Positions 6,809-58,600 of a DNA stretch of 64,000 nt are shown here, piece after piece. The notes beneath the pieces are model-generated. The model saw only the letters and a program-made list of their open reading frames with translations, was not told the DNA's origin and made no database searches. The translations under genes and the position numbers were made by a program. The stretch is from Amphiscolops sp. MND2022 (lineage: Eukaryota): assembly GCA_964187785.1 (NCBI GenBank), contig OZ076409.1, positions 67,518,001 through 67,582,000 on the forward strand, written 5' to 3'. Position 1 is the first letter of the stretch; each line of letters opens with the position of its first letter.

Positions 6809-6817
6809 TATATGGTA

Positions 6818-7057: not shown

Positions 7058-7076
7058 AGAAGAAAAAGGTTGTACT

Positions 7077-7199
7077 TCAAAATTTTGGTATGAATGAAAT
7101 TAAGAATTTGTCCAGAAAAAGTGCAAGACCGGCAACGATAGCAACAAAGAACCAAAAGCAGACAATGAGTTTAACAAGAGTGTCTACTGAAGGCGGCAT
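7077..7199 (-). CDS. Small hydrophobic ORF, 40 aa (MPPSVDTLVKLIVCFWFFVAIVAGLALFLDKFLISFIPKF)
   Basis: Hand translation (below the ORF-track cut-off); one ~19-aa TM-like stretch; lies in the element A leader. Confidence 0.4.
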   Translation of the reverse strand: MPPSVDTLVKLIVCFWFFVAIVAGLALFLDKFLISFIPKF

Positions 7200-7935: not shown

Positions 7936-7948
7936 CTTGGTCGCACCA
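7936..7948 (-). promoter_or_regulatory. Candidate primer-binding site of element A (TGGTGCGACCAAG)
   Basis: TGG-initiated sequence just inside the putative LTR end; cognate tRNA not assigned. Confidence 0.5.
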
Positions 7949-7950
7949 AT

Positions 7951-8192
7951 TGAGCTGTTAAAAAGTTGTGTGGTGGTTTCTTTTAGATGTTTTATTACTG
8001 ACATAAGAAGTCTAAGATTTTAACAGCAGAGTCGTCTTGTCTTATATCTTGTAGCTAGCTAGTTCTGAGTACAATCTATTTCTGAGATCTCAGTTCTGGA
8101 AGTGTCTGAGGGAAGACCGATCGTCAGGATGAATTCTCAATTTCTCCGAGTAGATATATTCTATTAACTAGGGTAGGTTTCATCAATTAACA
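7951..8192 (-). repeat. Putative 5' LTR of element A
   Basis: On the - strand it ends in CA two bases before a TGG-PBS and contains TATA-like GATATAAG (~8042-8049) and AATAAA (7991-7996); no second LTR to confirm. Confidence 0.5.
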
Positions 8193-25600: not shown

Positions 25601-28600
25601 GCGGTAGCAGAAACAGGGCATACGGTAACTACCTCCGAAGGGAGGGTAATACACAAAAAATTGGCATCAAAACCCCTGAAATTTCAGACATCACGAAAAC
25701 CTGAAGAACAAAGACGGCCAACCAATAGATGCCGCAGATGCGGAAAATTCAGCAGTGGCGAATGGTGTGAGACGCACTTACGTCTCGAGGCGGCCAGGCA
25801 GGACAGTAACAACAACGAACCCAGTACCAGTCATACCACAATTCCGACCATGCCGTCAAAGAAGCGACCATACAGCCGTGTGGTACTGTACGACTCCTCA
25901 AGCAACGATTCGGGACCGACAAATAATCAAGCCGATACGACCACCTCAGAAGAGGAAGACACCGACGACATCACACTCAAGGACATGATCGGCCGAGAAG
26001 TCGAACGCATACGGTCGGAAACACCGATGCCGTCCTCCCCAATCAGCTGTAGCACGGAGCTGATCCCGCCCGAAGATACAACACAACCGGACACATCCGG
26101 TACGCCAATCCGCAATCAAAGTACTTCCGGCATAGAAACCGCACCTCAGGATGTCACAGGTAAAATACGGCTAAAACAAAATGCTAACGGGGAAAATAAT
26201 CCATTAGATTTAACCATAGGACCACGCAGATCCGAAAGGATAAAAACTGCAAAAAGAATAGTTAAACTAGGCGGTGTTGAATATTTTTAACAGTGATCCA
26301 TTTAGGAACTGAGTATACATTCACCACTCCGAGGAGATACCCAATTACTCCTTTTCCCCGAATCAAGAACTACCCCCCTCAGCACGACTGGTTTCCCTGA
26401 ACGCCACGGAGGAGGGAATGAGACACAAGCATCGACATGTGTCAATCCAACAAGTGTCTACGATAAACCTTGGCGAACGATGTGACACAAAACTACCTGC
26501 CATTGATCTTATGTTCTGAAGTCATGTACTTACAAGATAGATACACTTACGATGATAAAGTACAGTTGCTTGATACAGTTTCTGTTACTTTGAATCATTC
26601 CATTTTAATTCACTCTTTGAACTTTTCCTGACTTACAGGTGCCTTTAGGATTCATCCCAAATTTTCTTCAATGGCGTTTTTCCCTTTCTTTTGCGGCTCG
26701 TTCGGGTGCTTCATCACTAGATCGATACCGTATCGTTTGGGGGGAACATGTTTTCTCTCCGATGATCTTTTCTCAACTTGCCAGGAAGTTGTTGCTTTCA
26801 CAGGGACAGTTTTTTTCTCAACTCTTTTCTTTTCGCCCGGGGCTTTGCTTTCCGTCTTGTATTGCATTTCGCCTTGGTTGACAGGACCCATTGGTTGGAC
26901 CTCGCTCTCTGTAGTATTTGACGAGGTATCAATTATGGACGGGGGTCTTTCTTCCTCGAACTCAATGGCGACTTCAGGGGTTTTCGCTTCTCCCCGCTTT
27001 GTTACCTTTCCCTTTTTAGGGGCTGGTTGTTCGGGCTCACTCGAACTGGAGGTATCGTTAATTTGGGCTTGTCGTCCCACTTTCTTGAGCACCTTCGTCT
27101 GTTCCGTGGATGTGCTCGCAATGTCTCGTTTAGAGAAGATCTTTGGTCGCTTGGTGTTTTCGGGGAGTATCCGAAACTTTCCCACTAAGTTTGTTTTTAC
27201 AGTGTTTGGCTCCTTCCCCATGTGCTTTTCAAATGGCAATTTCCCGTCCTTTTTCTTATTTATTCTCAGAGAGTATAAGATTTCCGATAATCCGGACTTA
27301 TCCTTACTCAGAACGATTTGCTTATTCGTCCGTAGTCGGTCATTTATCGTACGGATTAATCTTTCAATTTTTCCATTTCCCCTGTGATCTCTAATTGGAC
27401 AAAATACGTGGTCTATTCCAAATTTCTCGCAAAACTGCTTAAACGCTTCACTTACGAATACGGTACCCGGGTCCGTACGTATTTTCTTCGGTACGCCGTA
27501 TTGTGCAATATATTGTTTTAAAAATTCGATTACTTTTCTAGTTGTTGGACTGTGTAAAAATTTTGCGTCTGGCCATGCCGAAAAATGGTCCACCGATTCT
27601 AGCAAATAGTTTTTTCCTTTTTTAGCGTTTTGGAAGGGTCCCGCAAAATCTAGGGCCACCTCTTCGTTTTGCTCTTTCGCTTCAGGCACTTTTCCTATTT
27701 GCTTTTGTTTCAAAATGTATTTTAGGTTCTTACCTGATTCGAGACATTGTTCGCATAGTCGTGCCTGGTCAATCACCTCACGGTGAATGCGAGGCCACCA
27801 AATATCCTCGATCATGGCGAGCATTGCATCTCGACCAGGATGGCCATAATGGAGGGAACACATGATCATCGGTCTCATGGCTTGCGGAATAACTAATCGG
27901 TTATCCATGTAAAGGAATTCCCGTTCGTCTAGAGAAAAAGCTTGAAATTTCTCGCGCCAAGGAGACGGCAAGCGGGTAACGCCGGTTTTATTATAATTTT
28001 TTACTAAACGGATGACTCGCTGAAATAGTTTGTCAGCGCTGTAAATAGCCGGCAAGAGTTTTTCGTTAAATCTTTTATTGACGGACTTTGATTCATCTTG
28101 CGAGGACGTGCGGTATTGCTACAATGAGTCTTACTTGTTCCCCGCGAATTACGTTCGTCCTGCAATTTGATTGGCTGTCGTCGTTTTGTTTGATTAATGC
28201 GATTGACTGTATTTGCTTCATTCGCACTTTCCGCCGGCCTGCTTTTCACGCTGCTTGCTTCGCTGTTGTCTAAAACATCATTCAGGCTAATTACGCTATT
28301 TACCGTGAACCATTCATTCCACAGGGTTTCTGCTTTCACCGATGATCCCTGTAGCTCTGTTGGGTGTCTCGACAGATAAACTGCCATTCCTAGTGTTCTA
28401 GCTGCCACGTGCACATCTTCAAAATCAAATGGGAGTAATCTATCTACACATCTCGTTAATCTACTGGAAAATGTTTTGTTTCCCTTATTTGGCTTTAGTA
28501 CAGACATTGATGCTTTGTGATCAGAAACTATTTTAAAATGTACACCATATACATAATTTCTAAAATGTTCTACCGCCCACACGATTGCTATAAACTCTTA

Positions 28601-31600
28601 TTCATTTATAGAATATTTTGACTCAAAATCTGATAAAAACCTAGAAGCGAAGCAGATTGGTCTCCACTCCCCATTGGTTTGACTTTGTTGTAAGACTGTG
28701 CCTAAGCCTTGTTTGCTTGCATCGCAAATGATTCTAATTTCTTGGTTTCTTTTAAAATGAGACAATTCTACTACTTCTTTAATTTCATCTTTAACTTTCA
28801 CAAACGCCTTTTCATGCTCGGCATTCCATACCCAGTCCGCGTCCTTTTTCAGAATTGATCTAAATGGAAAACTGATACTTGCCAAATTAGGTATGACTTT
28901 GTTGAATTGGTTAACTGCTCCGAGAAATGAGCGTAATTGCTTCAAATTTGTCCGTCTCAGTTTATCGCTTATTCCCTGAGCTTTTGCATTGATTGGGGAA
29001 ATGCCCGTTCTTGTTAGTTTGAACCCCAACCATTCTATGTTTTCTTGTGCTATTATGCATTTTTCTGCCTTCAACTGCAAATTCGCTTCGTCCAGAATTT
29101 TCATTACTTCTCTCACTTTGTTCAAATGATCCTGCTTGGTTCCTTTAGTTACAATCATAATGTCGTCTATATACACAAATACACTATTTACATTTGCCAA
29201 AGTGATGTACATTAACTTTTGAAATTCTGTTGGCATTACTGTAAGGCCATAAAATCCCGTTGTAAATCGATAAGTGCCTGTAGATTTTCCCCCTACAATT
29301 TGGAAATTGCAATACCTTTTGGTTAATTCTTGTAACGGGATTTGTCCGTAAGCATAAGTCATATCTACTGACGAATACCATGCCTCCCCTCATTTTTCAT
29401 CTGACTTCTCTGCAATCATGTCGATTAAATTATCTAGGTTAGGCATTTGGAATTTGTCTTTTGCTATAGATTGGTTTAACGCTCTCGCGTCTAAGGCAAT
29501 TTTCACGGACTTGTCCTTTTTGACGGTTATTACTGTTGGCTGAATAAACACATCATCTTGGATTTTATCAATTTTCTCAATATGTCCCTCTTTTAATAGT
29601 TTGTCAATCTCTTTATCTACTTGATTTTGTAGCTGAATTGGCACTCGGCGTCCCTTCTGTTGGGTAATTCGTTTTTCATTTTAATTTTAATCTCGTAATT
29701 CTTCACACGTCTTTTTCAACAGAACAATTTTGGAAGTTCCCTCACTAACTGCTGAACCTGGGGATTTTGTTTTTTCTCGGGACTTATCTCACAGACTGAT
29801 TCTTTAAATTTACAATTTGTTTATTTATTTTACACTCACCTCTTTCTATCGGCTGCGTAATTTTGTAGCGGAGAGCAACTAGCCAATCACGGCCCACGAT
29901 TGATTTTCCTGAATTAGGGGCTACTAGGACTCGGGCTTTTGACTCCGTTACTCCTGCGACCTCGAGTCGTACGAATTGGTAGCCAAGTAATTCCAAGGGC
30001 TTTTTATTGTAATCAATATAGCGTTCTCCTTCAATCATGTCCCTGATCACAACTTTTCGTTCCCCCACAATTTTCTGTAGGTCCCGTTTTGTAAAAATGG
30101 AAACTGGTGACCCAGTGTCAATAATTGCTTTAAAATAATTGCCACACAATGTTCCTTCCATATAGAACGGTTTGCAGCCATCACAATCCACACGTAATAC
30201 TAGTTGCTCTTCGTCGTCTTCTTCAGATTCCTCATCTGATTCTTCGATGTAGTTTACTCTTCGCATACTTTTTTCGTTATCGCGATTCTTCAGTCGCTGC
30301 ATCATCTCTTTCTGTCTCTGAGGAAACTTCTTATTGCAGCATTTTTCTACATGCCCCACAATTTTACATAATTTACAACGATGATTGGTAGCCATGCAGA
30401 AGTTGACGTGTTCCATCGTGAAGTTTGCTGCTCCACATCTATAACACTCCCGGGGGTTAGTTTTATCTACCGCATAGACCGGTTCGCTTTTCACGACCGA
30501 CTTTGTTGGTTCGGGTGCTTGTGTGCCGTACGCCTTCTGTCGCTTCACTCCTTCTTCAAAAGCAATGGCAAATTCCAGTGCTTGGTCGGGCTCCTTAGGT
30601 TCCGTGCACAACTTTTCTTGCACCTTCTTATTATTCATGTGAAGAATGAACATATCCAAAACTAGGGTCGAAGTTATTTCCCCTAAGTCACATAAAGCTG
30701 CTAATCCGTTTATGGCGTGCCAGAGTTGAAATAGGGTTTCGCCGGGCTGTTGGAGTCTTGAGAAAAATCGATGTCTGTCGAGGGCTCGATTCCTCTTCTT
30801 TCGGAAGCAGTCGATGCATAAGTTGATTAATTCTAGGGCTTTCAAATCCCACAGGGCTTTATGCGGATACTTATCCATGAATTGCTTCCTCGCCGCATCA
30901 CCCAATGACAAGTACAGAATACTAATAGCTTTCTTATTTGCAGGATCTTCATCAAGGTCCCCCAACAACGTACGAACCCTGGGATTTTGCTGTGTCGTCT
31001 CACGTGTCAACTCGGAGATTGAGATGGAATATTTTGCCATCATGGCAACTTGGAAGAGATCGAACCACTTGTCCCATTCCATCGTAGGGTTCGTGGTCGC
31101 ATCGCTCCAGAACACTGGCAGTCCAGCAAGATGTGACGATGAAGAAAATGACGCCGAAGGATTTTCAGCTCGCAGCGCCATGTTGACGTGGAACTCAATT
31201 AGAATGAAAAGAATTGAGGGATAGATGTGAATTGATGATGAATTTAGACTTTTAACGAACTGTCTTTTGAACTTAGGCTTGAACGCACTGAGGCGTAGTA
31301 AATGTTAGAGTTAGACAATGTTACTGGTACTTGTTTACATACATAATTTTTGAATCAATTCATCGCTCTACTACAGCAATGTATCTAAATTTGCAAATGC
31401 TTGCTCATCTTTAGTTCGTTTAAAGATTTTCAAGTTATCTGATACAAGGGACTGGTTTATAAACACACAAAATCATGGCAGCATTTGACGAGGTTGCATC
31501 TTGTTGCTCGTACTTGTTATTAAGACTATATCAAGATTATTGTCAATGATCATTCACAACATTGACTCAACGTGAACTCTAAACTGTTTTCAAATTTACT

Positions 31601-37600: not shown

Positions 37601-40600
37601 GATTCTGCTCTGGGATTCCCGCTTTTGTTGCACATTTTTCGACTTGAAGTTCTTCAGTCCTCACGCTGCATCTTTTCCCAGAAACATCAAAGATGCTTAC
37701 AAACAACAAGAAAGTCAGAAAACAAACTAAAATATGAACTGAGAATCATCACAGCACCTTCAACACGGTATTCAAGACTTTGCAATTAGCTTCATTCGGA
37801 CAAAATATAGCCTTGCGCTTTTATGGAGCTCAGTATTATTCCTGAGAGGATGTTGCGCCCTTATGCGTCATATTTGATCTTGTGGAATCCTCCATCGCGG
37901 CAACAGTTCCGGAGGGAAGACTTTCTTGAATTATGACAACCCCAAGTGGGTGCATATCTTGACCGTCACTCTTTATGATTTTTTCAATGATATTCGGTAT
38001 TTCGATTTGGAAATAAATCCTCCACTTGTTGAAGTTTTCTACATCTATATGTATTGGGACCGTTACGGACACTGCAAGGAGGCTCTGTAGCTTGCAGTAT
38101 ATCGACACTATGTCATCATTGAGCCAAGAAAGTCCCCCTTGAACCCTGGGCATACCGTTGCATACCACCATAGTTTCGCTTCGCACTGTCCCCCTAGAAC
38201 ATTCAAGATTAAAGAGGAGGAGATATGAAGGAAGAAAGAAAGAAAATAAATAAAGAAAATGTAATCATAATTACTATGATTAGCTGGGAATCGAACAGTG
38301 TACTTTATGACAGACTTTAATCAGCTTGTGTTTGTATAAGTCATCGCTAAAACCAACAGTGTTTGTAAATCTTCCAACGAAAACGAGGTATTAGAAAATA
38401 ATACGCAAATTTAACTGGTCCTATGGCTCAAGCTTAAATATTTTTCTGTTTCACATTTCACTGCTAGATGTCAAACTGGTTTTATTGCTTTTCAACAACG
38501 TAATATCTTTTGGGGCCCTTTCGCTGCATTGAAGCTTCCATGAGCGCAATTCAAGTGAATGCTTTCATTTTTAGGTCCCTCCAATTGACACTCATTCCGA
38601 CAAAGGGACGATTCCGAAGGAAATACAAGGTCACATCGTGTTTGAAGACCTTAACTTTTGCTATCCTACAAGACCACATACAAAGGTGACTAGTTGATTA
38701 GACTTTCATACGTGCTTTTAAAAAATCGATTTCTGTACTTTGAAATCAATTATATAGAAAAACTACAGTTTGTTTCAGTTAGTACAGAACTGAACTACTT
38801 AAGAAAAGGAGCCATGTCAACTAAAATCATAAACAATTTCATACTTATTATTCCTAGTGTAGAGGAGAGTGCTCCGATCAGTCTAGACAGTGTTACTAAA
38901 CACCTGTCACGAACTTTAAAGGACACTAGTTTGTACTATTCAGTTGATGCTAACTTTTAGTTCGAATACAGTTAATCTATACATTGTATCGTTACTTCTT
39001 AATCCTAACTTGAGCATCCAACCTTAATCTCTTATCGAGTCTATAACATGGCGCAGTCATAGAAGAAAGAACCAGAAGAAGAATCAATGGAAAACACCAG
39101 TGGATCCGACCCAACAGCGGTCAATCAAACGACAGTCGAGAGGACTGAGAAAAACAAATACAAAATTCCAATCCTATCAGATAGAGAAACCGATCTATCG
39201 AAAGCAAACCCCAAGATGTGGTGGGAACAAATATCAGAATACATAGACCTAACATACCAAAAGAAACTGGAAGAATTATTAGAAAACGGAACCGACTCCA
39301 TCGATCCACATACAACATACCACATCAAAGGCGATGTCATATGGGCTCTGGGCCCGAAGGCAAAACACGAGATCATGAGGGGCCAATGGGGAAAAGAGCT
39401 CAAGGACATCAGTCTACAAGAACTGCTGAAACTGTTCAAAAAGACCTTCCTACCCGCAAGAAACATATTTCATAGCCGGGCCCAATTCTTTAACATTAAA
39501 CAAGAAGAGGGCGAAACACTGGACGAGTACTGGAAGAAATTAGTAGACATAGAGAGAAAGTGCGAATTCGGTAACATCACACCCGAAGACATAATTACCT
39601 ACAAATTTGCAGCATCCATAAATGACAAAAAAGCCCGTGATAAATTCATCAAAGGCCCCCTGAAACTGCAACTGGTATTGGAGACGATCGAACTAGACAA
39701 CTACAATCGTAAATACGGGGACAAGCCATCACATTCCAAGAGACAACGAAAGAATTCTTCAGAAAATACATCCGAAGACGAACAAGTCGGATACACCAAA
39801 CCGGCAGCGAAACGAAAAAACACATTCACCGGTAAGAAGAAGAATTCAGAACAAAATTGTCACTTTTGCGGAAAGTCAAACTGGACACCCGAGCACATTT
39901 GCCCGGCACGGAAAGCTAAATGCAATAACTGCAGGAAATCCGGACACTTTGCCAAGGTTTGCCGATCAAAGACCGTGAATTTGGTACACGAAGAAGAAAC
40001 GGACGGCAGCACGGAATCATGGCCAGAAATCGACCATATTCAATCCGTGAACGGAATAAACCGCGTAGATTTCTACAAAGCAATCCTATTGGTGGAGGGG
40101 CAGCCAATAGAATTTGTCATTGATACCGGCTCACCCGTGACGATAATTCCACCGATTATTAATCCAGAAGGGATTAAACAAACCACAAAATGCTTCGTAG
40201 ACGTAAATAAAAATCCCATCAAATTTAGAGGCGAGGCGATGGTTGAGGTCAAGACCGAGAAAACACAAGTGACATTGCCCATACTAATTACGGAGAAGAA
40301 GAATACACAACCTTTACTGGGATTGGACTGGCTCGACAAACTGGAAATTGGGTTACAGGGGAGCCGAGAAACAAATATCATCAGAAACATATCCACAAAC
40401 AGTAAAGGTGAGAGAATCTTTGAAGATTTCGGAAAGCTTTTCAAAACAAACCACACGATAAAAGATCTAACTATAGAAATTCAATTGAAAAAAGACGCAA
40501 AACCGATACAACAAAAGGGAAGACCGGTGCCAATACATTTTCAAAAAATAGTGAAAAATGAACTAGATAAACTCATCGAAAAGGGGCACCTAGAAAAAGC

Positions 40601-43600
40601 AGACAAGACAACTGAAAATTGTTTCGTTTCACCGGCGGTTATAACAATAAAAAAAGATAAATCAGTGAAAATCGCGTTAGACTCCCGGAAATTGAACGAA
40701 TCGTGTATAAAACGAAAAGCAACCATGCCCAACATGGAGGAATTAATCAGTCAAATTTCCGCGAAAATCACACAAAGCGACGGCGAAATTTGGATGTCCA
40801 AAATCGATTTAGATTATGCGTACGGACAAGCCAAGTTATCCGCCGAAGCGTCGAGACACTGCGTATTCTCCATCATTGGTGGAGAATTCACCGGACACTA
40901 CCGGTTCAAGAAAGGTTTTTATGGACTCGCGGACATTCCAACGGTGTTTCAAGAGCACATAGATAAGGTCTTAGAGTTTAAGACACCGGTATGGTTAGAT
41001 GACATCATTTGCGTCACAAACGGAACAATAGAAGAACATGAACGGGAATTGCGCGAAGTGTTAACAAAACTACAAGAAGCCGGCTACCGAGCGAGCGAAA
41101 GAAAAACAGAACTGTTCAAAAAAGAGCTAACCTGGTTGGGATACTTGATAAATCAGAACGGAGTAAAACCAATCCAGGATAAAACTGATGCGATCACAAA
41201 GTTAAAAGCTCCCACGAACACAAAAGAATTGAAATCATTCCTTGGCTCCATACAACATCTGTCAAAATTTTTAAATAACTTGTCGAAAAAGACCGATCGA
41301 ATGCGAAAACTACTCAAGAAAGACGTAAAATGGGAATGGACAAAAGAGATAAATGACGATTTCGAACAGCTAAAGAAAGAAATAACTGAAGCACCGTGTC
41401 TAGCACATTTTGATCCGAAGAAGGACAATTTTATAACAACAGACGCTTGTAACACCGGACTAGGGGCAACCCTATGGCAAAAAGAAAACGGGGCGTTTAG
41501 ACCGGTCGCGTTCGCAAGTCGATTCCTCACCGACTGTGAGAGAAAATACGCCATAAATGAGCTAGAATTACTAGGCGTACTCTGGGGCCTCGAGTACTTC
41601 CGATATTACGTATACGGCAAACGGATAAACCTCTTGACCGATCACCAAGCACTACAACCATTATTGAAACGAAATAGAGCGCATAAACAATACAGCGCAA
41701 GACTTACTAGATGGTTAGACCGACTAAGCCATTTCGATGTGAATGTGCAGTATACAGCCGGTAAAAACATCCCATTAACGGATTATCTGAGCCGACATCC
41801 AATCGTCAACGAACTCGGAACGGAAGAACTTAACGCAAACGAAGAAAAAGAAGCCGAAGAGGAGTTCGTAATCAATCAGATATACGGCTTATTTGAGTTT
41901 AACCGAACGAACGGCAGTATTACGCAATACATCAAACGACCACACTCGGCAACGAATTCCGGCCAATCACAATGCCGCGCGCGAACACGTGAACAGAACA
42001 GCCGCGAACGGTCAGATCAAACTTTCTCATCGTCAGATAACACCGAATTAATTGACAATTCAAAACACTTATCCAAATTAACTGAAATGTCTAAATTGGA
42101 AAAAGTTAACGGAATTGATTTACAATTCATCTTCAAAAAACGCGGACATTCCCCGGAAACCGGCAGACTGAGGACGGAGAGGCTAAAATTATTGCAGCCA
42201 AATAAAACCCGGATTGTAGGCAAAGGTAGCGAGAACGAACGAATCCAGGACTACCGCCCGACGCAACAAGAGAGAAAAGAAATCGAGAGGATAAATATCC
42301 TGATATACAATCGATTTTTCAATTACTGTGAAACCATCGGGACAACACCACTGAAGGAGTTTAACGAAAATGTGCACGAGTCCTGGATCAGCAACCCCTC
42401 AGACAACGAGAGCCACGTTAGCCATCTGAAAACCGAGAAATGCCCAATCAGTGTCCTGAAAAAGTTCAAAAGACACGAAAGTGTAAACTTGATCCGGCTG
42501 AAACAGACCGCAAAATTAAATACACTACCCGAAGACAGGAACCAAAAGACAGCCGAAACAATTCGGAGAGCAGAAAAGGACTTCGCATTAGATTTGCCAC
42601 TGCTGGTGGAAGAGACGGCACAAGATACGAAGATATTGGACGCCATAATTGCACTGGAGGCCGGCAGAGCGGAAGATCTATTCTATCCTTACCGCCCCCA
42701 CTGAGAGCATTTAGGGACACGATTCGGGCTGCTCTTCTACAACGATCGAATCGTTATTCCGGAGACAATGCGCTCAACAATCATAGCGATGCTACACAGC
42801 GGCCACGTATCCGTCACAAAGATGGACAAATCAGCAGAGGCGTTCTGGTGGCCCGGACTACACCGTGAAATCAGAGAAAAGGCGGAGACCTGCCCGAGTT
42901 GCCGAACAGCAGGTAAGAATCTAAAAACACAAATTCCGCAAACGGAGGTAAATAGACTCGAAATTTTAACCGAACCGGGCCAGGAAATCCAACTAGATTT
43001 TGCGGGTCCGATAAAATCGAAATCACGCGGAGACGTTTACATTTTAGTCGCGGTCGACCGTTTTAGCAAATGGCCGACGGCCCAAATTTGTAAGAGAACG
43101 GACTCTCGGACCGTAGTAAAGTTTTTAACAAAATATTGTGCCGACAACGGAACACCGAGAACAATACGTACCGATAACGGCAGTTGTTTCAAAAGCCAAG
43201 AGTTTAAAATTTACTGTAAAGGCGAAAATATAAAAAGGATACGCAGTACTCCAAATTTACACACAGGAACCGGATTGGTTGAAAGAACCATACGCACAAT
43301 CAAATCACTGACCAGAGCCAACTTGGAAGACGGCTTAACTTTTGAAGAAAGCGTCACAAGAGCAATTAAAACAATTAGACAAACCGTGCATAGCACACTT
43401 AAAATGACGCCTTTCCAATTACATTACGGCCGTAAACCGCGCACACCAATAACAAATCTAATTGGACAGCCCACCTGCCTATTAACTGACTGGAAGAAAA
43501 CACTAACTAACTACATTTTAGCCCAACCTGCAGAATTACAAGTCTACACCATACAAGACTCAGATGGGGAACTGGCCGACTATCTGGTCCTGAACGAGTC

Positions 43601-46600
43601 GAGGAAGAGGGGTAGATCGGTAAGCGGTGATTTTAAAAACTATAAATTTTTTGAAAAAGAAACCAAGCCAAATGCAATGAAATGCCGGTTCAAAACCGAT
43701 AAAATTCTAACCGCAGCCAAAGAAACTAAACACACCATAACAACAACTGAGGGAAAACTAATTCATAAGAAATTGGCATCTAAACCTCTAAAATTTCAGC
43801 CATCAAAGAAGCCAGATGAAACACGAAAACCAACAACGAGATGCAAAAGGTGCGGCCGCTTCAGCAATGGAGACCTATGTGACACCCACAAACGGCTGTA
43901 CCACAAACAAGATGACCAGAAAAAGGCAACATCGGCCATGACTTTCCCAACAATGCCGGCTGAACGACCAAAGATAATACCAGACATCACCACGATATCA
44001 ACCGACAGCCAGTCAGACCATACCGAGGAGTTACCGTCCACGGCAAATATTGATCCCGAGCTGACCGTAACCGCGGACATAAGGTATGCCAACGGACAAC
44101 CGGAGGAACAAAAGGCCACGGATACCCCTGCAATTTCTTCGCCGATCGGTTGCAGCACCGAACGAGCCCCGAAACGAAAAACAGCAGGACGTGACGGTAC
44201 CCCCACCGGATCTCCCAACAAAACAAACAGCCCAGCCAAGAGAGGTTTAGTAGATTTTGGCTTAGAAAGGGGGGAAAATATAGAGAACATAGAGGGAGAT
44301 GGGGGGATACGTAGATCAAATAGAATTAAAACAGCTAAGAGGGTCGTAAAAATGGGCGGGATCGAATACTTTTAACAAACTTAAAATAATTCCAGATCCA
44401 AAGCAACAACAGCAGAAAAAAGTGATCCACTTTACTCGGAACAGCCCACAACCATCCGACACCCCGAAGCCTGATGGACAGAAGAAAACCCTAAAACCCG
44501 AGGAGGGGGGAGTGTAGAGGAGAGTGCTCCGATCAGTCTAGACAGTGTTACTAAACACCTGTCACGAACTTTAAAGGACACTAGTTTGTACTATTCAGTT
44601 GATGCTAACTTTTAGTTCGAATACAGTTAATCTATACATTGTATCGTTACTTCTTAATCCTAACTTGAGCATCCAACCTTAATCTCTTATCGAGTCTATA
44701 ACACCTAGGTCCTGAAAGACTTTTCGATGGAAGTGGGACCAGGTGAAACAGTGGCTCTAGTGGGTCCCAGTGGATCTGGCAAGTCAACTATCATCAACTT
44801 GATGCAGAGATTCTATGAGAAAACATCTGGAAAAGTTAGTCAAAGCAGATAACCGTTTTTCCTACCGTGTCGAGTGATTATAGAACTACGTTCTTATGGT
44901 AAAAGCAAATTGAGCTAAAAATACCCATTTGAACAATATGTTTCTTTTTGTTGTATATCCAACTGTACATAGTTTGATGAGAAGTAATGACCTTTAAAAA
45001 AGGTCACATTTCGAGGAGAGTATTATTTCGTGGACTTGGAAAATGCATAGATTTAGAAACAATGAAATGACAAAATGAAAGCGCGTGATTGTGGATAAGC
45101 GGTGATAATTTAAATATCACTCTTAAAATTTTTCATAATGTTCCAGATACAAATTGACGGTATTGAGATTGAAGAGCTGAACTTGAAATGGTTGCGTGAA
45201 CAAATTGGGCTGGTATCGCAAGAACCTGTTCTGTTCGGGTGTACAATCAAAGAAAACATCGAATACGGGCGTATTGGAGTCACAGATGAAGAAATTGAAG
45301 AAGCCATTGACAATGCAAATGCTCGAGAATTTATCACAAAACTACCAGAGGTTTGGAAACAGGGCACGTTCATCTTTTCTCCAAACGCAATTTTTATCAA
45401 ACATTTTGTTTTCACACATTTGCAACATATCCAAGAACTTCTGCCTTCGACTTCTTTCACGTTGCTCACAAACTACGACAATGTCTACAAACGCGTTGAT
45501 AAAAACACGAGAAACTAGTGACGCCACAGGGAACATTTCAGAGCATGAGAGATTCTCTGAAAAAATTCATCCTAAAATCTTAGCTGTCTATAAAAAGTCA
45601 GATCAATTAGGGACGACGTAAGTTTGATGTAAATGGTTTTGATTTTCGAGAGAAAATCATTGAACTGAAATATGTTTTGCATGAAATTTGATGTCATCAT
45701 TGCTTGAGCCCTTTTCGAAAACCAAGCAAACGTCATCAATCCGTTTTTTTGAAAAAAAACAGCAGCTATTTCAGTTGATGAAGTTCAATTACTTGAGCGC
45801 TTTATAATTTGTTAACAGCTGCGCATTAAACGTCTTTTTATTTCTATGGTTTCTATTTTCTTTGCATTGAGACTTGCATCAAATAGTGTTTTTGTGAGCA
45901 CTTTGTAAAAAATATGGAGCAAACTGTTTCAGTGGCATTAGGGATAAGCGTTTTTTCAGTCATCACGACTTGGCACGTAAAATAGTTCTATGGATAATGA
46001 ACACCAAAGACACGATCACCTGGTAGTTCGAATGATGTTTCTACACAGAAGATGACAAAGACCATTGATTTTCACTTTTCAAAATTGAATTCCACCACTC
46101 TATATACTCTGACAATTCTTCCGAGTCCGAGTCAGATTTCATATATTTTGAGCTTCAAGCCTGTCCAGTTATGTTCCGCTTCGGGTGCTCGTTTGTCTTA
46201 ATGAACAATTTATTTCAGCAAAACTATTGTTTTATGATTGTACCTTCTGTCATAAGATGTGTAGTGCAACAGAACAACAGAATATGAAAGAAAAGACTGA
46301 AACGTGAGGTTTATCTCCTGTTTGTCGCCAACTCTTCAATCTGTGAAAAAATGAATCCCAATTTTTGTTCACACTTCAGGGCCTCGACACCTTGGTAGGC
46401 GAGAAGGGTTCTCAGTTGTCTGGTGGTCAGAAGCAGAGAATAGCAATCGCCAGGGCCCTAGTGAGGAATCCTAAAATACTCCTATTGGACGAGGCCACAT
46501 CTGCACTGGACAGCAAGAGCGAAGCCATTGTACAAGACGCACTGAATAAAGTAAGTTTTGGAACGACCGACACCTTCATCGTTTCAGCTGCCCATAATAA

Positions 46601-49600
46601 TTGTCATATCATCCAAAAAAGTTCATTGTTGCACAAACCTTTATGTCATTAGACAAATGCAGTTTTCTGAATACTAAATAGTATGATACTTCGTACTTCC
46701 AGGCGAGAAAAGGTCGTTCAACAATTGTGGTTGCACACCGATTGTCAACCATCAGGGACGCCGACAACATTATAGTGATTAAAGACGGAGACATTCAAGA
46801 GACCGGCAGTCATGATCATCTCATCAGGAATGGGGGTATCTACTACGACATGATTCTCGCACAACGACTGGAAGAGACTGCTGGTTAGGAAAAAAGTTTC
46901 TTGCCTTTTTCAACACCAAATTTCTCTACAACTGTTTTACTGCAAAGATGGAAGAACTATGGTTGCCAATACAATTCCAAAACGATACCTCTGTGGTCCA
47001 ATGTTTCTGAAGGCGGTTTCTTGAATAAATGTTATTTGTGTCATACCTGTGCAAACTTGATATCCAAAAAATATATTCAAATATTTTCAATTACACAGAC
47101 CTGTTTCGATGTTGCTTTGGAAGCCTCAAACCTCCAAAAAAAATATCAAAATTATTCCGGGTAATTGAGCAACAATAAATTTGTCTTTTTTGACTTCCAA
47201 GATCTAGCTAAAGTTTAGGCTGCGTCCTTGACTACTTTCTTTTTCTGATATTTAAAAACTTTGATCACTCATAAATAACGATCTGGGTCACGATTTAAGT
47301 TATTGAATTACATTCCAGAGGAAGCTAAAGAGGATCAACTAGACTACGGAAACGACCCTGCTGTTGTGGTAGAAGGTAAAGAAACTGGGAAACAAACGGA
47401 AGAAAACAATGCCCAAGAGGGAGAAAAGAAAGAAGTAAGAGTAGCAATTTCTCTAGGTTTTTGCAGAAGCAATATCAGATTGAAAGTCAGAAGACTTTTC
47501 TTTAGATTATTCTCATGACAATTGAGAACTTTGTGGTTTTTATTGTTATTTTTTCAGGACGAAGCACCCCTTCCGGGAATGATGGAAATAATGGCAATGA
47601 ACTCACCCGAAATTGGGTACCTGCTCGTTGCTTTCATCTTGGGGTTCATCGGCTTCTCCTGTATTCCTTTGCTGTCCCTTATCATTGCTGAGTTGCTCGA
47701 AGTGAGTTTGATGAGCAGTGAACAACAGGGAAGCTTGGCATAAAATTAATAGATCCACTATTTTCATTACCGTATCATCGTTTTTGAGTTGGAAGTTTTA
47801 AAAAATGCATTACTTGTATTGTAGTGTCCAATGCTTATCATAGACTTCATAAGTATTTACATTCATAGGTAAAGCAGTCGCTAAATCTATATCCAGATAG
47901 TAGCTATTCACTCGCTTGAGTATACTCTCTCCTATGGCATTGTGACAGTGTCATTTTCGACGGGCTAACAACCGTCCTGACACGCATGACGAATGAGTTA
48001 ATTTGTCGTTATCTTTGATAAAGTTTTTGAAAATCAGTTGGGAGTGACGAATTAAAAGTCCTAAAAGTGCCGGCTTCTTGTATCTTCCCTGGTTGAAAAT
48101 AAATATAATTTTTGCAAGATTCTTGCAAGATCTTGACAAAAAATACAGATCTTGAAAGAAACCTGCCAGAAAAATGCATTGTCTTGCAAGATTTGTATTT
48201 TTTTTTCAACTAGGATTCTGTCAAAAACGTTGAATGACATGGCAGAAGCAACCCTTGAAATTGGTAATTTTGAATTTTGGATGTACTGCAATGACTTAAG
48301 CTACATAAATTTATGATTTTTATCACAAACTATGTTAGAGAGATCAGCTTAGACCATTTGTATTAACTTCCCAGGTGTACGTTCTGCCCGCTGACCAAAT
48401 TATGAAGGAGGCTTTCAAATGGGGCTTGATGATGGGCGGATCGGCGATGCTGCTGACCCTCGTCTTGCTGGGGTCAGCCTGGGGGTTGGCTGAGTCATCG
48501 TCCAGAATGACCCAAAGACTCAGGGCGGGCTCATTCAGGGCTTTTGTTAGACAGGTTTGTACCAATATACAAACCTGATATCAACTTTTATGTCAAAAAA
48601 ATACTTTTTAACTAGGTTTTAAAACGTTTTGTACCAGAGATTTTCAACGGAATAGCCAAGCTTGCGCCAAATGATTTAAGATACACTTCGTTGCATATTG
48701 CGTTTCAAATCATTTGCAACATGCCCCGCCTTACGTCGAATCCCCAAGTACCTGTCACACAAATTTTTGAATAAACTTCAATCTCAAGCTCATAGAAAAG
48801 CTTTGGGAATCCTTCTGGATAAATGATGGTGGGCATGATCTATGCAAAAAGATTCAAGTTATGTTCATTCGCTATGACAAAACCCTCCTTAGGTTGCTTA
48901 GACGATTTTAACATCCCGGACCGTCCTCGCCGGGTTCCAGACTGGCATCACACAGAGGTGGAACATTACAGTGCACAGGCAAGCTATTTTGCTGCTTTTC
49001 GTGGAATCCGGAACACGAAAATTGAGAAAAGTCGTGGAATCCAGGACAAAATTTCTCTTTGATCTTAAGCGTGTCTTGGATTCCACGACAGTGCTTGTCC
49101 TGGATTCCACGCCAATACTGCTGCTATAGTGACACTTTTGCCGCTGCTCTCTGATTGGTCCGCTGATTTTGAGTAATCATTTTTGGAAAGGTAGAAAAAT
49201 TTAAATTAATTCAATTTTATATCAATTGAACTTGTTTTGACTGACACGAAAAGTCCCAAAAAACGAATAGAGATACTTATGACTGGTACCAAAATTAAAG
49301 CCTGTCATCAAATATTGGCAGATTGTGATGATCTGGCAGTTTGTTCAAAACTGGTACTGAACTTAAAACTACGAATATTTGTGTAATATAATATTCATTT
49401 TGCATGATCATTATTGAAAGGCAGAAGAACCTAAACTAAATCAATTTTAAATCGAAGGAAAATGTTTTGATTGACACGAAAAGTCCCAAAGTACGAATAG
49501 AGATACTCATGACTGGTACCAAAATTAAAGCATGTCATCAAATAATGGCAGATTGTGATGATCTGACAGTTTGTTCAGAACTGGTACTAAACTTAAAAAT

Positions 49601-52600
49601 ACGAATATTTGTGTAATATAATATTCATTTTGCATGATCATTATAAGAAAGGCAGAAGAACTTAAACTAAATCAATTTTACATCGAAGGAAATTGTTTTG
49701 ATTGACACGAAAAGTCCCAATGTACGAATAGAGATACTCATGACTGGTACCAAAATTAATGCATGTCATCAAATAATGGCAGATTGTGATGATCTGGCAG
49801 TTTGTTCAGAACTGGTACTAAACTTCGAAAGATACGAATATTTTGTGTGATATTGGTGTGTTTGTCTGTTTGTCTGAATCATTTTGAATTAATATACGAA
49901 AAGTAGTGCATAATATTATGTTTGTTCAGTGTTCCACTTGAATTTAATTAAAGAAGAGATGCCGCGTATCGCGTCAAGCATAAAGTCGTGGAATCCAAGA
50001 AATTTATGATTTCTGCAATCTGATTGGTTCATTTTGCAAAACTTACGTTTTTGTGGAATCCGGGACACCGCTGCATGCCGACAGTGCGTACAGCTAAGCA
50101 TTTGTTACTGCAATCCACGACGAAATCCGTGGAATCCGGGACAAATGACGTAATTTGCCAATTTTGCACGGTTAAAGATATGGTCGTGGATTCCGAGGTT
50201 TTGAAAGCACAATGTTGCGCTTTGAGCACATAAGGCTTGCCTGTGCACTCTAATGAACTACATCAACGTAGGTCCTTGTGGAATTGAAGTTTTTAGTGTC
50301 CAGTTGTGATGCATCAGTGGCAATATTCTGAGAAACTTCCTGCAATTTTGTGTTCAAGACCGTCTATGAATCTTAGCAAAGTAAAACCGGTGAAACCTTG
50401 TGGAGGACAGACGAACTGAATTTAGAAACTAATTAGTCTGCCTCATTTCTATTTATTGTCTAAATCGACAATGATGCACTTTATAGTATGTACCTGCCTG
50501 CCACATGAGTGCAGATGATGTTCTCCTTACATATTAATACAAAAAAAAGAACAGAGCTAGAGAATAATTAAATTTTACATGCTAAAGTCTTTTTAACAAG
50601 TATTCTAACGAGATACAACATGGCGCAGTCAGCGTAACCACAGAGTTACCAACGAACAAGTACTTAACTCCAAACATGGATGACAGTACAGTCAACACTC
50701 CAATGAATGGAGCCACAAACAGGACGTCAGACGAATCTCAACCAGGTGATCAACCGTTACCAAATGACACTCTAAACAGAAGCAATGAACGGACGTGTAC
50801 ACAGAAATTAACCATCCCAACATTGGAAAAACAAGATTACACCAACGCCAACATGTGGTGGCGGAAGTTCGTACAAAATATAAAAAGGACCAAGGATTTG
50901 GATCTTTCAAAGATGACGAACAACAAAGAAATACTGCCACAATACCGTGATCAATTGGAAACGGTGATAAAGGACATATTCCTATGGGCAATTGGACAGA
51001 ACGAAATCACGGAAATGACCAAAACGGTTAGAGAGAGAGAACCAAGCTCACTACCGTTATATAAACTATACACACAGTTTCGATTACATTTCACACCGGA
51101 GAGAAACGTCCAACACAGCCGAGCCGATTTCTTCGACCGAAAACGGGAAGACGGAGAGTCTACGGCGAATGTATGGAAACGAATACTAGAAGTCGAAAAA
51201 AACTGCGAATTTGAAACAATAACCGCGGCAGAACTTTTAGCATCAAAATTTCTGACCGTGATTGGGAAATCAATGGGTGATTACGACATCAAAAAGAAGA
51301 TCAGAAAAAGCGACATATCCATTGAGGCAATAACAGAAGCATTACAATAATACATGTATGAAAAATTAAACGACTCACCAGAAACAGAAGAAGAGAAGAA
51401 AATCGGATACCTCAATAAAAGGAAAACAAAGTGTACAAAAGAATTGTCGCAAAAATCGACAAAATTCAAGAAACTAGACTGCAATAGATGCGGAGCACCA
51501 AACTGGACAAGACAACACGAATGTCCAGCCAAAGGAAAGAAATGCGAAAAATGCGAGAAGATTGGACATTACGTAAAATATTGCAGAACAAACAAAAGAA
51601 TAAATCAAATACAATATGACGGCGCAAGCAGCGCGGAAGACGATGACTGGTCACCAAACACAATCCATTCAGTAAATCAAAAGGTCCATTCGACACGCCA
51701 AATCAAGAGGAATGGTCCGGAATTCTTCACCATCACCGCATTGGTGAACAACCGACCAATCAAATTCATAGTGGCAAGCGGTTCACCGGTAACCTTAGTT
51801 CCAAAATCACAGTTCAACGGAATAACACCATTAGGGCCAATCGGAACCGAATACAGAGACGTGAATGACAACCGGATAAAACTTGAAGAAAAAACAAGCA
51901 CCTCAGTAGAAATAAATGGCGAAAGAAACGACCTTGAAATACTGATAACCACAAGGAAAACCAATCCCCTATTAGGTTTGGACTGGATGGAAAAACTGGG
52001 TATAACACTGGATACCGGTAAGATCGGTCCACAAATAAACCAAATAACCGAGGACCTGGATATAACCATCCTGAAGAGGCGATTCAAAAAACGAAAACCA
52101 CACCGTAAACGGAATCGAAGTGAAAATACAGTTGAAAGATCATGCCAAGCTGATACAACAAAAGGGAAGGCCAATACCGATCCATCTACAACAATCGGTC
52201 GGAAAAAAGTAAATAAACTCATGAAACAAGGGCATATCAAAAAAGCAAATAACATTGACGAAAATGGTTTCGTTAGCCCGGCTGTAATCACAGTAAAAAA
52301 GAATAAGTCGGTAAAGATTGCATTAGACTCGCGAAAACTCAATGAAATTACCATTAGGCTCAAATGCCGAATATGGAGTAGTTAATCTCAAGAATTTCCA
52401 GAAAAATTGCGGAAGGCCCAGCAGACGAAATCTGGACCTGAAAACTTGATTTGGATTACGCGTACGGCCAGTTAATCCTATCCAGAGAAGCTCGGAACCT
52501 ATGCATCTTTGCCGTAACCAGAGGCGACTTCACCGGTTACTATCGTTTCCTGAAGGGTTTCTACGGTTTACCGGACATACCGACCATATTCCAGGAAAAG

Positions 52601-55600
52601 ATCGACCAGACACTGGAAAGCAAACATCCAGCATGGTTAGATGACATTACCATCGTCACAAAACGGTCGAAGAAACAACACAAAAACGAATTGCTTGAAG
52701 TACTAACCCGACTAGAAAACGCCGGTTACAGACTCAGCGAAAACAAATCCGAATTCTTCAAATCAGAAATCGAATGGATTGGCCACAAAGTAGACCAAAA
52801 CGGAATCAGACCGTTCCAAACAAACTAAAGGCGATAAAAACTCTGAAACGACCCAACAACGAAAAGGAACTAAAATCGTTCTTGGGGGCTATCCAATGTT
52901 TGTCTAAATACATAGACAACCTCTCCGCCCAAACGGACAGTTTAAGACAACTCCTAAAGAAAGACATGGATTGGATATGGACGAAAGAACACACCCACAT
53001 GGATTGGATATGGACGAAAGAACACACCCAGGCTTTCGAAAATATCAAACAGAAAATCACGGAAATACCGTGTTTGGCTCATTACAATTCAGACTACCCA
53101 AATATAATAACAACCGATGCCAGCACAAAAGGCCTCGGGGCAACACTTTGGCAAGAGCAACCAGATGGAAAATTAAAACTGATCGGTTTTGCCAGTCGAT
53201 TTCTCTCGGATACCGAGAAGAAATATGCAATCAATGAACTTGAATTACTGGCTGTAGTGTGGGGATTAGAACAATCCCGATTATACATTTACGGTAAACC
53301 GATCAAATTACCCACGGATCACCAAGCATTAGAACCGCTAATCAAAAGAAACTGATCCAATAAGACCTATAGCGCGGCTAACAGGATGGTTGGACCGGTT
53401 GGCACACTTTACTATCAACGTAAACCATATCGCCGGTAAACACTTAGCACTCACGGATTATTTGCGCAGAATTTCGTCACCGCCGCCGCAAACGGACGAA
53501 GCGTACGCCGAAGAATACGTCATCAATAACATCATGTAGCATTACAAGTTCATCTCCATACACGGTTGCCTTAGCAACCACGTTAACCAATCAGAGCGCG
53601 AGACGGTCGAAAGCGAACGCAAAGTAAATAACAAATCACGGCCGCAAGACACACATAAGCAAACTGCTATTGATTGCCTTAACAATTCAACGTTAACACG
53701 CCATACACCGATCAATACCGAAACCAAAATGGACGTCAAAACTATTGAAATATTAGCAGCGGTAAACTTTTCCGTCGAAATAACTCAACTAATCCAGCGA
53801 TGGAAAGAAATCGTAAAATCTGGCATCTACCGGATGACCGGAGGGAAGTAGAAAAAATACCACGAACCAAAATTTCTAAATTTCTACGTAACGAGCGAAA
53901 AGTAATCGAAGAAAGATTACAACAAATCATAAAGGGGCAAGAACAGGGAGACCTAAGACAGCGAATTGGTCCACAACACAGCGGAGGATTCCAACCACAG
54001 ACCAGAAGATCTGAACAATGGACCGTCGATCCATTCTGGTAGGTGGACAGACCAACACAGGTCCAACACGAAAATCGACCCGGCAACACGAAAATCGTCA
54101 GCCTCACCGGGCCAAGAGCTATTCGCCCCTATGCCAATGGAGGAAGGTGAAATCGAATCAGAGACGGAGCAAGACCCGTCAATCCTCGAAGTCCCCGCAA
54201 TAAAATGGGCACTCTATGTGGGGGTGAAAAGCGTGCAATACGTCAAACTGGGACACGCCCCGAAAATTGCAGCACAAGAGGAAAACAATTGGGACCTAAC
54301 ACAAGCCGTAAGAGAAACAGAAAGAAATTTCTCAACGGATTTGCAGCTGCTATTGAACGAAACTACAAATGACCCGACACTGTTGAAAACACTAGTCTGT
54401 CTTGAACGCCAACAACATGACCAAATCCCGGACGAATACTTACCACATAAAAAGAAATTGTTAAGCCGATTCGGCCTGGTCTTTATCAAAGACAAAATTA
54501 TTGTTCCCAAGAACCTCCGGACAACGATAATCAGTCTACTCCATAAAGGCCACCCCGCCATCAACAAAATGACAGCTGCTGCAAAACGCTTCTTGTGGCC
54601 GAAGATGACGGAAGCGATCCAAAAGAAATGCGAGTCGTGCATCCTGCAAAATGTCCGATAAGAACATTGAACCTAACATACCGAGTACGGAAAAGAACAA
54701 CCTTCCCCGGTTAGATAATCCAAACGAAGAAATCCAAGTGGATTTCATCGGACCAATCACGGTAGACAACCGTCGATTTCATTTTTTGCTGTCGATGAAC
54801 CGGTTCAGTAAGTGGCCAGCGGCAAGCTTTTGCACATGTACTGAAGGCGAAACGGCAATAAATGTTCTCGAACAGTACATCCAATTGAACGGAGTACCAA
54901 AAACAATAAGAACCGATAAGGCCATCGCCTTTACGGGACGCTTGTTTAGAGACTTTTGCAAAAAACATTACATCAAACTAATATACGGGACACCGTATAT
55001 CCATACCCCTACCGGCCTGGTAGAGCGGGGGGTCGGAACATTGAAGGAAAATCTGCTAACAAACATTTAAGCCAGAGAACGTTTCAGTAAGGCCTTGGAT
55101 TTATCGCTAGATGTAATGAGAAAAACACCACACTCACGTTTGAAAAAATCTGCTTTCGAACTGCATTACAGCCGAAAACCTAACACGGAAATAAGCAATC
55201 TACTGGAACTCGATAATTTGGAAAAAACTAATAAACCATTCCGTTTTAGCAAACACAGATACCTTGCAGGTATACTCATTCAATGGAGCTGGCGGTGTGT
55301 CTGACCAGCTGCCAATGAAACCGAAGAAAAACACAAAAGGAGTTAAAAAATTATCCTTTTTTATTTCTAGAAAAAAACATCAACGTAACATATTCGAAAG
55401 CGCTTACTCCGATAAACCACAACTAGCAGTATCGGGCACAAAACATACCGTACTACACCAAACGGAAGAATCCTCCACAGGAAAATGATTAGTAAACCCA
55501 TTTCTGAGTTTTCCCGGGAGCAGAACAACAGAGGGATTGGGCCAGGCGGACCAGACGGCCGATTTATCAGATCACCATCAAAACAAAAACGGGCGATGGT

Positions 55601-58600
55601 GCTAGAATCGGACAGCGAATCCGAGACGCCGTTGATGGACACAGAGAGTCCAAAACCCCAGAACAGCCGGCAAACACAACCATCAAGGGCGCATTCGGGA
55701 GAGGCAGACCAAAGCTGGTCCGAGACCAATCAAGCTCAAATTCCTCACAGACAACAACCACACCAGGCACACTAACGATAGTCGCCACGAATATGAAGGA
55801 CACGGAAGTAGACCGTGCCATAGAAGACACTAAACAAGCGGATCAAGAAAATTTAATCAGAGACGAAAACGGTAAGGTTTTTACTGACAACAACACTAAC
55901 TCATATACTTTAAAAGATAACTTTGAAAACTCTGATCTAGAACTAGCGAGCAATTTAAGCTCAAGTACCGATTTTGACACTGAAGAAAAGGAACCCGTAC
56001 GCAGATCGAAGAGACTGACAAAAACCAACCCAATTATTAGATATAATAATCCTGTTTGTCATGGTTACAGGAAACACCGTAAGAAGACTGAATTCGGAAA
56101 CAACACCGAATCAACTAACTGCACAACCGGAGGGGAAAGAAGACGATCTCTGGACCGGTCCAAAACAAACATTCAGACGTTACGGCCAATTCTCAACCGA
56201 AACGGACAAACTTGCCAGGAACGGTCAACCGTCCTCCATACACCGGACCAGTGGAGGAATAACCACCACAACAGGAAACACAACACCCCCATTGGCCAAA
56301 CATCAACCAATTGTAGAGTGGGGAATGTGGAGGACAGACGAACTGAATTTAGAAACTAATTAGTCTGCCTCATTTCTATTTATTGTCTATATCGACAAGG
56401 ATGCTATTTATAGTATGTACCTGCCTGCCACATAAGTGCAGATGATTTTCTCTCTTACATATTAATATAAAAAGAACAGAGCTAGAGAATAGTTGAATTT
56501 TACATGATAAACTCTTTTCAACAAGTATTCTAACGAGATACTACAAACCTCCAAACCATGCATAACTTTTGTCTTCTTCCATTATCTGCTTGCTTGGAGC
56601 CTCGAAAATGATTTTTTGATACCTTCCAGTTGGTCAAGAACACGTGCCAACGTTCATGTCGAAATATCGAAAAGATGTTTCCGAAAAAATGGCCCATTCA
56701 CAATGTTTTGCACAGAACATAAGGTTTGAATTGCTAATCAATTTGGAAAGTTTAGAGTGACCCGGTGCAATCGAAGTGGCTTGCCTCGAGTAAATTATGA
56801 GAGTAATTCAATCTTCCAAAATGAGTTTCCACCAAAAAAAATCATCAACGAGTTCGTTAATTGACTACTTTATAGTAATTTCCCATGTATGGAGAACATT
56901 GAGTTCATAAAAGAATCATACTATGATCATCATATGGTTTAAAAAATTTTTCTCTTGTATGATCATTGTATGGCTTAGCTGATTTTATACATCACTTTGA
57001 ATGATTTTTTATGATGTAGGGTATTGCGAAGGGGTTTTGTAAGGAGATCAACCCGGGTGAGCCCTCCAAAACACACAAAAACATCACAAAGTGCGAGTTC
57101 TTTGTTTTTTACTTCGTTACGACTGTTTTCAGCTGTTAATTTTTTGAAAAGCGTTTTCAGAAATGTGCTCATTATGAAAATTGGTACGAAATTGATCTGG
57201 GGAAATTTTCACGTGACCAGTAGATTTTGAAAAATTACGTACTAAACTTTGAAAAATTCCGAAATTCCTCAAATAATATGATATATAACTTTTTAAAATT
57301 TCTATCGAATTTTTAAAAATCCCTGTAATTTTGATCAAAATCTGAGAAACCTTTGCTTTTGGGATTTTTGTCAGATGCACGTCCTAAAAATATGCTTCTA
57401 AAGTTTTCGCCTGTGATCATAAACCAACAGTTCTGACAAATCTGTCTGGAATCGGAAAGTTTTTTTTCGAAAAAATGTATCGAAAAACATCTATGAAATT
57501 CTAAATCGAATTGGTAGCTACACATTCCATTTTTTGGAAGGTAATGCATTTTCAGAAATTTAGCATGCTGTTGGTTCAGCAAATTTTTTATGCTCTGAAG
57601 CTAAACACTTTTTAAACGAACTTTTTGTTCGCTGACTTCGTTTTTGGGTTGACCTTATTAGGCAAGAAAACAGTTCATTTCAGAACACTTCCTCAGAGTT
57701 GATTCACTTATCAAATTTTCAATCATTCTACAGGATATGTCATTCTTTGACGACAAAGAAAATTATGTGGGTGCTCTTCTGGCTCGACTGGCGACCGAAA
57801 CAGCTCTGGTTAAAGGAGCTACAGGTATCAGACTGAACGCTACCATTCAAGCTTTATCGGGTCTCGTTGTTTCCCTGATTATCGGCTTCTACTACAGCTG
57901 GCAAATCACACTGCTGTTGGTACTGGCCATTCCTATAATGATGGCTTTGGGAGGAGTCAGCATGAAGTTCCAGGCAGGTTTCCAGATGAACGCAGAGGCC
58001 GAAACGCGGAGCGGTGGAAAGGTCCAGTGATGTTTTCATAATAAAAAGGATGTTTTACTTTAAGAAACGTCTTGGGAATTGTCAGACCTACCGAAACTTC
58101 TTGATTGGACAACTCATTTCATTGGAATTCTAGAACACCAAATATTGCATGAAACAACATCATAATACCAATTCGAATAGATATTTATAAAACATTCCAG
58201 AGGACAATAAGGCTTTTCCAATTTGAGTTTGTACTGTGCTTCCAGGTCACAAATGACGCAATCGCGAGTATTCGAACTGTCCAAAGCTTCGGATTGGAGA
58301 AGACGTTTTTCAACCACTTCTACAGCTCTATAACTGTCACTCACAAGTACTGATTTCTGGAATGTTTCGTAGTTTAACAAAACGAACTTAACATGTACAA
58401 GGGTCATTCAAAAAACAATAATTTTCAAGCATATTAAAATCAAGGTCAATTAGATAAAACGAATTACATGTTGCCACGCCAGAGAAAAACTAGATCAGCT
58501 TCAGGGCCCTAACAGTCTAAAAACTTTCACAATGCTTCAGTGGAATTGATTAGAATTTTATCAAATTAAAGCTTCGGAACTCTATCATTGCTAGAAAACT

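Follow-up and report, generated by a model that had tools for sequence, protein, structure and literature searches.

The 64,000-nt stretch of the Amphiscolops sp. MND2022 genome analyzed here (assembly GCA_964187785.1, contig OZ076409.1, positions 67,518,001 to 67,582,000 of the forward strand), referred to below as the window, includes a gene for an ABCB1/P-glycoprotein (P-gp)-type transporter. A long terminal repeat (LTR) retrotransposon of the Ty3/gypsy group, here called Z, is inserted in this host gene exactly on a 3' splice site. The sequence duplicated by Z, CCTAG, is the final five bases of a 172-nt phase-0 intron just 5' of the exon for the Walker A motif of the first nucleotide-binding domain (NBD1). 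A preliminary description of the window had placed Z in this register, and the placement was confirmed base for base. The native acceptor with its pyrimidine tract now precedes the 5' LTR, and a duplicate AG stands directly before the Walker A exon, as had also been described.

Insertion site and structure of Z

Element Z is 5,846 bp long, lies on the + strand and is in the sense orientation relative to the host gene. The features of the insertion site and of the element are as follows, in window coordinates.

38575-38685, + strand: host exon preceding Z, NBD1 loop region; phase-0 end ..YPTRPHTK, donor AAG/GTGACT, frame read directly
38686-38857, + strand: original 172-nt intron with branch region, pyrimidine tract and AG; now adjoins the 5' LTR
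38853-38857, + strand: first copy of the target-site duplication CCTAG, the native acceptor (from the sequence)
38858-39048, + strand: 5' LTR, 191 bp, TG..CA; TTTAAA at 38915, AATACA at 38965, donor-like CTAG/GTTTGT at 38928/38929
39049-39062, + strand: primer-binding site, TGG start
39087-42704, + strand: open frame for gag, protease, reverse transcriptase (RT) and RNase H, 1,205 codons, closed by the stop at 42702-42704
42705-44375, + strand: integrase part (zinc-binding domain, catalytic core), in the frame shared with the part before the stop
44500-44512, + strand: polypurine tract GAGGAGGGGGGAG (from the sequence)
44513-44703, + strand: 3' LTR, the same as the 5' LTR; the Walker A exon now has only its U5 end as a possible source of branch and pyrimidine sequence
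44693-44694, + strand: cryptic competing AG (gAG), 14 nt upstream of the Walker A exon
44704-44708, + strand: second copy of CCTAG, with the AG directly before the exon (from the sequence)
44709-44834, + strand: NBD1 Walker A exon, 42 codons, phase 0 at both ends, first in-frame ATG at 44727

The two LTRs have TG..CA ends and are 100% identical over their 191 bp, as previously described. The primer-binding site, TGGCGCAGTCATAG, begins with TGG at 39049, 3' of the 5' LTR, and the polypurine tract ends at 44512, just 5' of the 3' LTR. Pfam domains are in the order gag (residues 109-170 of the frame), aspartic protease (335-423), RT (522-686), RNase H (751-883), and then the integrase zinc-binding domain and catalytic core. 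The integrase domains follow further on in this frame, past an in-frame stop. Since integrase comes last, unlike in copia, Z is a Ty3/gypsy (Metaviridae) LTR retrotransposon. It shares with this group the TG..CA LTRs, the 5-bp duplication, the primer-binding site, the purine tract and the domain order. Nothing in it is unusual for the group, apart from one stop in the reading frame, at 42702-42704, which separates RNase H from integrase. This stop is private to Z; it is found in none of the 17 other full-length copies that were sampled for the family comparison, nor was it seen in family contigs of the reads.

The 5-bp staggered cut covered the final AG of the intron, and therefore an AG stands at both junctions of Z as a mechanical outcome of the integration. 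It was correctly noted before that the duplication regenerates the acceptor AG, but this follows automatically from the 5-bp cut and reflects no special property of Z and no consensus in its family.

The reading frame depends on which AG is joined to the donor. Splicing to the upstream AG (38857) carries the frame into LTR sequence, where 13 codons are followed by a stop, whereas splicing to the downstream AG (44707-44708) gives an uninterrupted transporter of 1,170 codons. Both outcomes had been anticipated in the preliminary description and were read again from the sequence. So had a cryptic site shortly before the exon: splicing to the AG at 44693-44694 adds 14 nt and gives SITPRS-stop. CTAAC at 44660 and CTTAAT at 44678, earlier proposed as a substitute branch region, are present at these positions in the U5 of the 3' LTR. 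A donor-like CTAG/GTTTGT is also present in the 3' LTR, at 44583/44584, 125 nt before the acceptor at 44708, and a short intron internal to the LTR is conceivable.

The host gene and its paralogues

The host gene extends on the + strand from ~18793 to 62800 of the window, as mapped with an intronless paralogue and acoel ABCB1-like proteins. GT..AG boundaries were chosen so that the exons preserve the frame and agree with these templates. The resulting model has 19 exons, which join into an open frame of 1,170 codons when Z is removed inside a 6,023-nt intron. It is 49% identical to acoel ABCB1-like proteins, aligned over residues 1-1167. The two halves of the transporter match each other, and two transmembrane domains and two nucleotide-binding domains (NBDs) are encoded in one polypeptide. 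Walker A, signature, Walker B and H-loop are intact in both NBDs; the Walker A motifs are GPSGSGKST and GPSGAGKST, and AHRLST is found twice. By these features, the host gene is an ABCB1/P-gp-type full transporter. Its putative function in xenobiotic efflux is assigned by homology only.

The intronless paralogue (G000:C8:41946802-41950314, L001:1303-4815, minus strand) has 1,171 codons and both NBDs, and it lacks the N-terminal part. It looks like a processed copy of an ABCB1 paralogue. It crosses the exon junction at the insertion site uninterrupted (..YPTRPSVKVLKNFSMEV..). When it was used as a query, the best named matches were at 55%, from the acoels Convolutriloba macropyga and Symsagittifera roscoffensis, and no annotated product of the host gene was found in the same search. 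Judged by this protein similarity, the likely lineage is acoel. The open frame around the exon at 45147-45350 was also searched against the protein collection. The only 100% match was the window's own frame, the others being paralogues at up to 89% or proteins of other species, and no spliced protein fragment of this species was found.

Tandem ABCB1 paralogues lie downstream of the window, from G000:C1:67606395-67606737 (L003:6395-6737) onward and near C1:67694168, and others are found elsewhere in the genome. The nearer tandem paralogue, ~50 kb downstream, shows 89% identity across the Walker A exon, and its intron at the corresponding codon boundary is 74 nt long and carries no insertion. 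Because this paralogue carries an intron at the same codon position, the intron/exon boundary at which Z is inserted is real.

Other LTR elements occupy introns of the host gene. A nested LTR pair at 20387-31375 lies in a 12.8-kb intron. The outer element has 195-bp LTRs, 97% identical to each other, and the duplication GCAAT. The LTRs of the inner element (20699-26637) are 219 bp long with 99% identity, and its duplication is GGTGC; this element is related to Z at 72-79% and shares its orientation. A third gypsy-type element, at 50399-56452 on the + strand, is found in a 9.2-kb intron, between the exon end at 48554 and the next exon start at 57734. Its LTRs match with 95% identity over at least 127 bp; pol is split into several short frames. 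The elements whose strand was determined, namely Z, the inner nested element and the third element, are all in the sense orientation to the host gene. The intron before the third element contains a tandem repeat at 49181-49871, composed of three 230-bp units with 100%, 90% and 76% identity to the first.

The insertion of Z could be without consequence if the host gene were a redundant or barely expressed pump copy, drifting as a neutral or newly dead paralogue. The tandem paralogues from C1:67606395 onward and near C1:67694168, the further copies elsewhere, and the presence of four LTR elements in the introns of one gene are all compatible with such a state. However, all 19 modelled exons are open and the ATPase motifs are intact, which fits a gene that was functional until recently. 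No RNA run containing its exons was found, which points to missing data rather than to silence of the gene. An insertion without consequence is regarded as unlikely.

Origin of the insertion and its predicted effect on splicing

The family of Z is a young and abundant Ty3/gypsy family. In the 1.07-Gb genome, at least 40 matches to the Z LTR at 98-100% identity were obtained from 353 first-look candidates. Compared with the 17 sampled copies, Z shows 30 to 51 substitutions in 5.8 kb. Target-site duplications of 5 bp accompany all 17, and because of this uniformity the insertion of Z is a genuine integration rather than an assembly join.

Targeting of acceptor-like sequence by the family was considered and rejected, since the 18 duplications (Z and the 17 other copies) have no consensus; no common motif was found among the duplicated pentamers. 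The position of Z on the acceptor looks like chance, a coincidence and not targeting. By our rough estimate, which was not computed on an annotation, a few insertions in exactly this register would be expected genome-wide before selection. The estimate assumes that the ~1.07 Gb contain a few hundred thousand introns and that LTR elements have inserted many thousands of times.

The preliminary description regarded the insertion as very recent. The identity of the LTRs agrees with this, but the dating is loose because each LTR has only 191 bp and because identical pairs are the norm in the family (14 of the 17 other copies). Zero differences in 2 x 191 bp bound the age of Z only coarsely, to the order of 10^5-10^6 years at ordinary mutation rates.

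Alleles with and without Z were sought in the assembly and in reads from the only four runs found, all from one sample and none of them RNA. The reads are stored as contigs, which drop variants, and were compared over 38783-44782. No empty-site joint skipping Z was listed in the contigs of the four runs; their output is dominated by element-family contigs and does not show junction-spanning contigs, so it says little on zygosity. No second haplotype of the locus was found in the assembly, where both flanks are unique apart from the paralogues. The search for another public assembly returned one contig encoding the neighbouring open frame, identical at 20,381 of 20,381 bases, and this is the same assembly.

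One might suspect an error of assembly, or an event that is somatic or confined to one molecule and so not in the germ line, because Z is supported by one assembly and one sample only, the contig in the European Nucleotide Archive (ENA) is the same sequence, and the reads output has no explicit junction-spanning contigs. Against this, the 5-bp duplication is perfect and of the size typical of the family. Z lies inside an 866-kb contig, away from scaffold joins. No empty-site joint appeared in the contigs of the four runs. Z also differs by at least 30 bases from every other sampled copy, and so is not a collapsed repeat. A non-germ-line origin is therefore very improbable.

The two acceptors differ in their simple features. 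The pyrimidine fraction from -20 to -4 is 0.76 at the native acceptor (38857) and 0.53 at the new one (44708), compared with 0.47-0.82 at the other acceptors of the gene. The AG-free zone is 46 nt at the native acceptor and 14 nt at the new one, with a range of 7-71 nt at the others. On paper, the new acceptor would thus be usable but weaker than the native one, and it would be transcribed 5.85 kb later. In the 5' LTR, the donor-like site CTAG/GTTTGT at 38928/38929 scores among the best donors in Z by a weight matrix. Together with the native acceptor, it would delimit a 71-nt exon, 38858-38928, which holds the stop.

Z integrated in the sense orientation with a stagger over CCTAG, and repair duplicated these bases, leaving a YAG at each end of the element. 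The following consequences are proposed. The donor at 38686 still faces an intact native acceptor, with its branch region and pyrimidine tract, at the unchanged distance of 172 nt. Splicing to this acceptor would enter the LTR and reach a stop once 13 codons have been read. For the Walker A exon, only the duplicated AG behind the LTR U5 is left, where the pyrimidine tract is poorer and another AG competes from 14 nt upstream. The likely fates of the transcripts would be inclusion of the 71-nt LTR exon (38858-38928) or termination inside Z, and at most a minor share would be joined from 38685 to 44709 and encode the full pump. The ABCB1 paralogues, both tandem and dispersed, could buffer the loss and may make the allele tolerable.

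Because the native acceptor is intact at 172 nt and the new acceptor is poorer, mis-splicing or termination in Z appears likelier than smooth removal of the element. It is probable, in our analysis, that a chance Ty3/gypsy insertion on an acceptor has produced mostly mis-spliced transcripts, and that the allele is null or strongly hypomorphic and is buffered by paralogues.

Several points weigh against mis-splicing as the main outcome. Two older sense-oriented gypsy insertions are found in other introns of the host gene, and the frame is still open. Whole elements can thus occupy introns of this gene without decay of the gene, although in those introns the native acceptors still adjoin their exons. 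The LTR of Z has no canonical AATAAA. Under exon definition of long introns, an acceptor without a good donor after it could lose to one adjacent to an exon. Finally, a position weight matrix derived from the other 16 introns of the gene failed to tell real acceptors from decoys: 22-41% of the decoy AGs reached equally high scores. Because this matrix is too weak, the ranking of the acceptors rests on pyrimidine content and the AG-free zone.

In a different outcome, all of Z would be removed with the 6,023-nt intron through the duplicated AG. A useful amount of full-length pump would then be made, and the allele would be a tuned or leaky one, segregating in the population. With 38685 joined to 44709, the frame of 1,170 codons is open again. 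The features of the new acceptor fall inside the range of the real acceptors of the host gene, plausible branch motifs are found 19-45 nt upstream of it, and two other introns of the gene already carry 6-11 kb of sense-oriented LTR elements. There are also precedents. In white-apricot of Drosophila, with copia in an intron, and with the retrotransposons in introns of maize waxy, some transcripts splice out the element and the allele is leaky. Those elements lie well inside the intron, and both native splice sites keep their exons; Z instead severs the native acceptor from its exon. This native acceptor is intact, stronger, transcribed first, and only 172 nt from the donor, while the new acceptor has a competing AG 14 nt before it. 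An empty-site allele was found neither in the assembly nor in the contigs of the four runs of the one sample. Removal of the whole element as an intron is a real possibility, but it is clearly the less likely outcome.

The 3' LTR and the Walker A exon are only five bases apart, and Z might instead split the pump gene into two working transcription units. Transcripts from the upstream unit would terminate within the 5' LTR and code only for the first membrane domain. Those promoted by the 3' LTR would be translated from the in-frame ATG at 44727 into a protein made of NBD1, the second transmembrane domain (TMD2) and the second NBD (NBD2). A minority of transcripts would lose all 5.85 kb of Z through the AG of its own duplication, as a leaky full-length route. 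The allele would segregate and alter xenobiotic tolerance. Such a split of the gene is considered doubtful. Mis-splicing with loss of most or all of the pump is retained as the preferred interpretation.

Other repeats in the window and comparable insertions

The window contains no N. Outside the host gene, its positions 1-8000 contain a direct repeat, 1-942 versus 3566-4507, with a spacing of 3,565 bp and 99-100% identity. The GC skew there is unusually strong, at 0.37-0.47.

Insertions comparable to Z have been described in the mouse. Almost all ETn insertions that are mutagenic, like many IAP insertions, lie in introns in the sense orientation, and they act via splice sites of the element and via polyadenylation (PMC6466679). 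By analogy, these cases favour the proposed loss or strong reduction of function at Z. The likeness to Z is that young LTR elements lie in introns in the orientation of the gene. The mouse elements join LTR splice sites to a downstream donor or a polyadenylation site, and in one ETn case, T-Wis, the insertion is on a splice donor (PMC6466679). The difference is that the mouse acceptor is inside the LTR, whereas at Z the gene's own acceptor is placed before the LTR.

The closest case in terms of the gene is mouse Abcb1a, where an intronic retroviral LTR leaves some CF-1 mice devoid of P-gp (PMC6466679 Table 3, PMC3419875); it points in the same direction. This allele, Abcb1a(mds), belongs to the same gene family, and there too an intronic LTR element disturbs splicing; in the mouse it segregates in an outbred stock and decides the sensitivity to xenobiotics (avermectin) (PMC6466679, PMC3419875). 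The two insertions differ in structure. In the mouse, a solitary antisense MLV LTR in intron 22 causes exon skipping. Z is a full-length gypsy element, sense, exactly on the acceptor before NBD1.

In our judgement, the case of Z would be a further example of a familiar type of event, in which a sense LTR insertion in an intron disturbs the processing of the host mRNA; it has a mouse precedent in the same gene family and is not a new mechanism. If carriers and non-carriers exist, the locus would be a clean natural experiment on the choice of a 3' splice site in a little-studied animal lineage that is probably acoel. The contest would be between the native branch region, pyrimidine tract and AG, which no longer have an exon of their own, and a bare duplicated AG beside the real exon, 5.85 kb further on. 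The allele could also act as a naturally occurring knock-down of a single P-gp paralogue, much like the allele of the CF-1 mouse.

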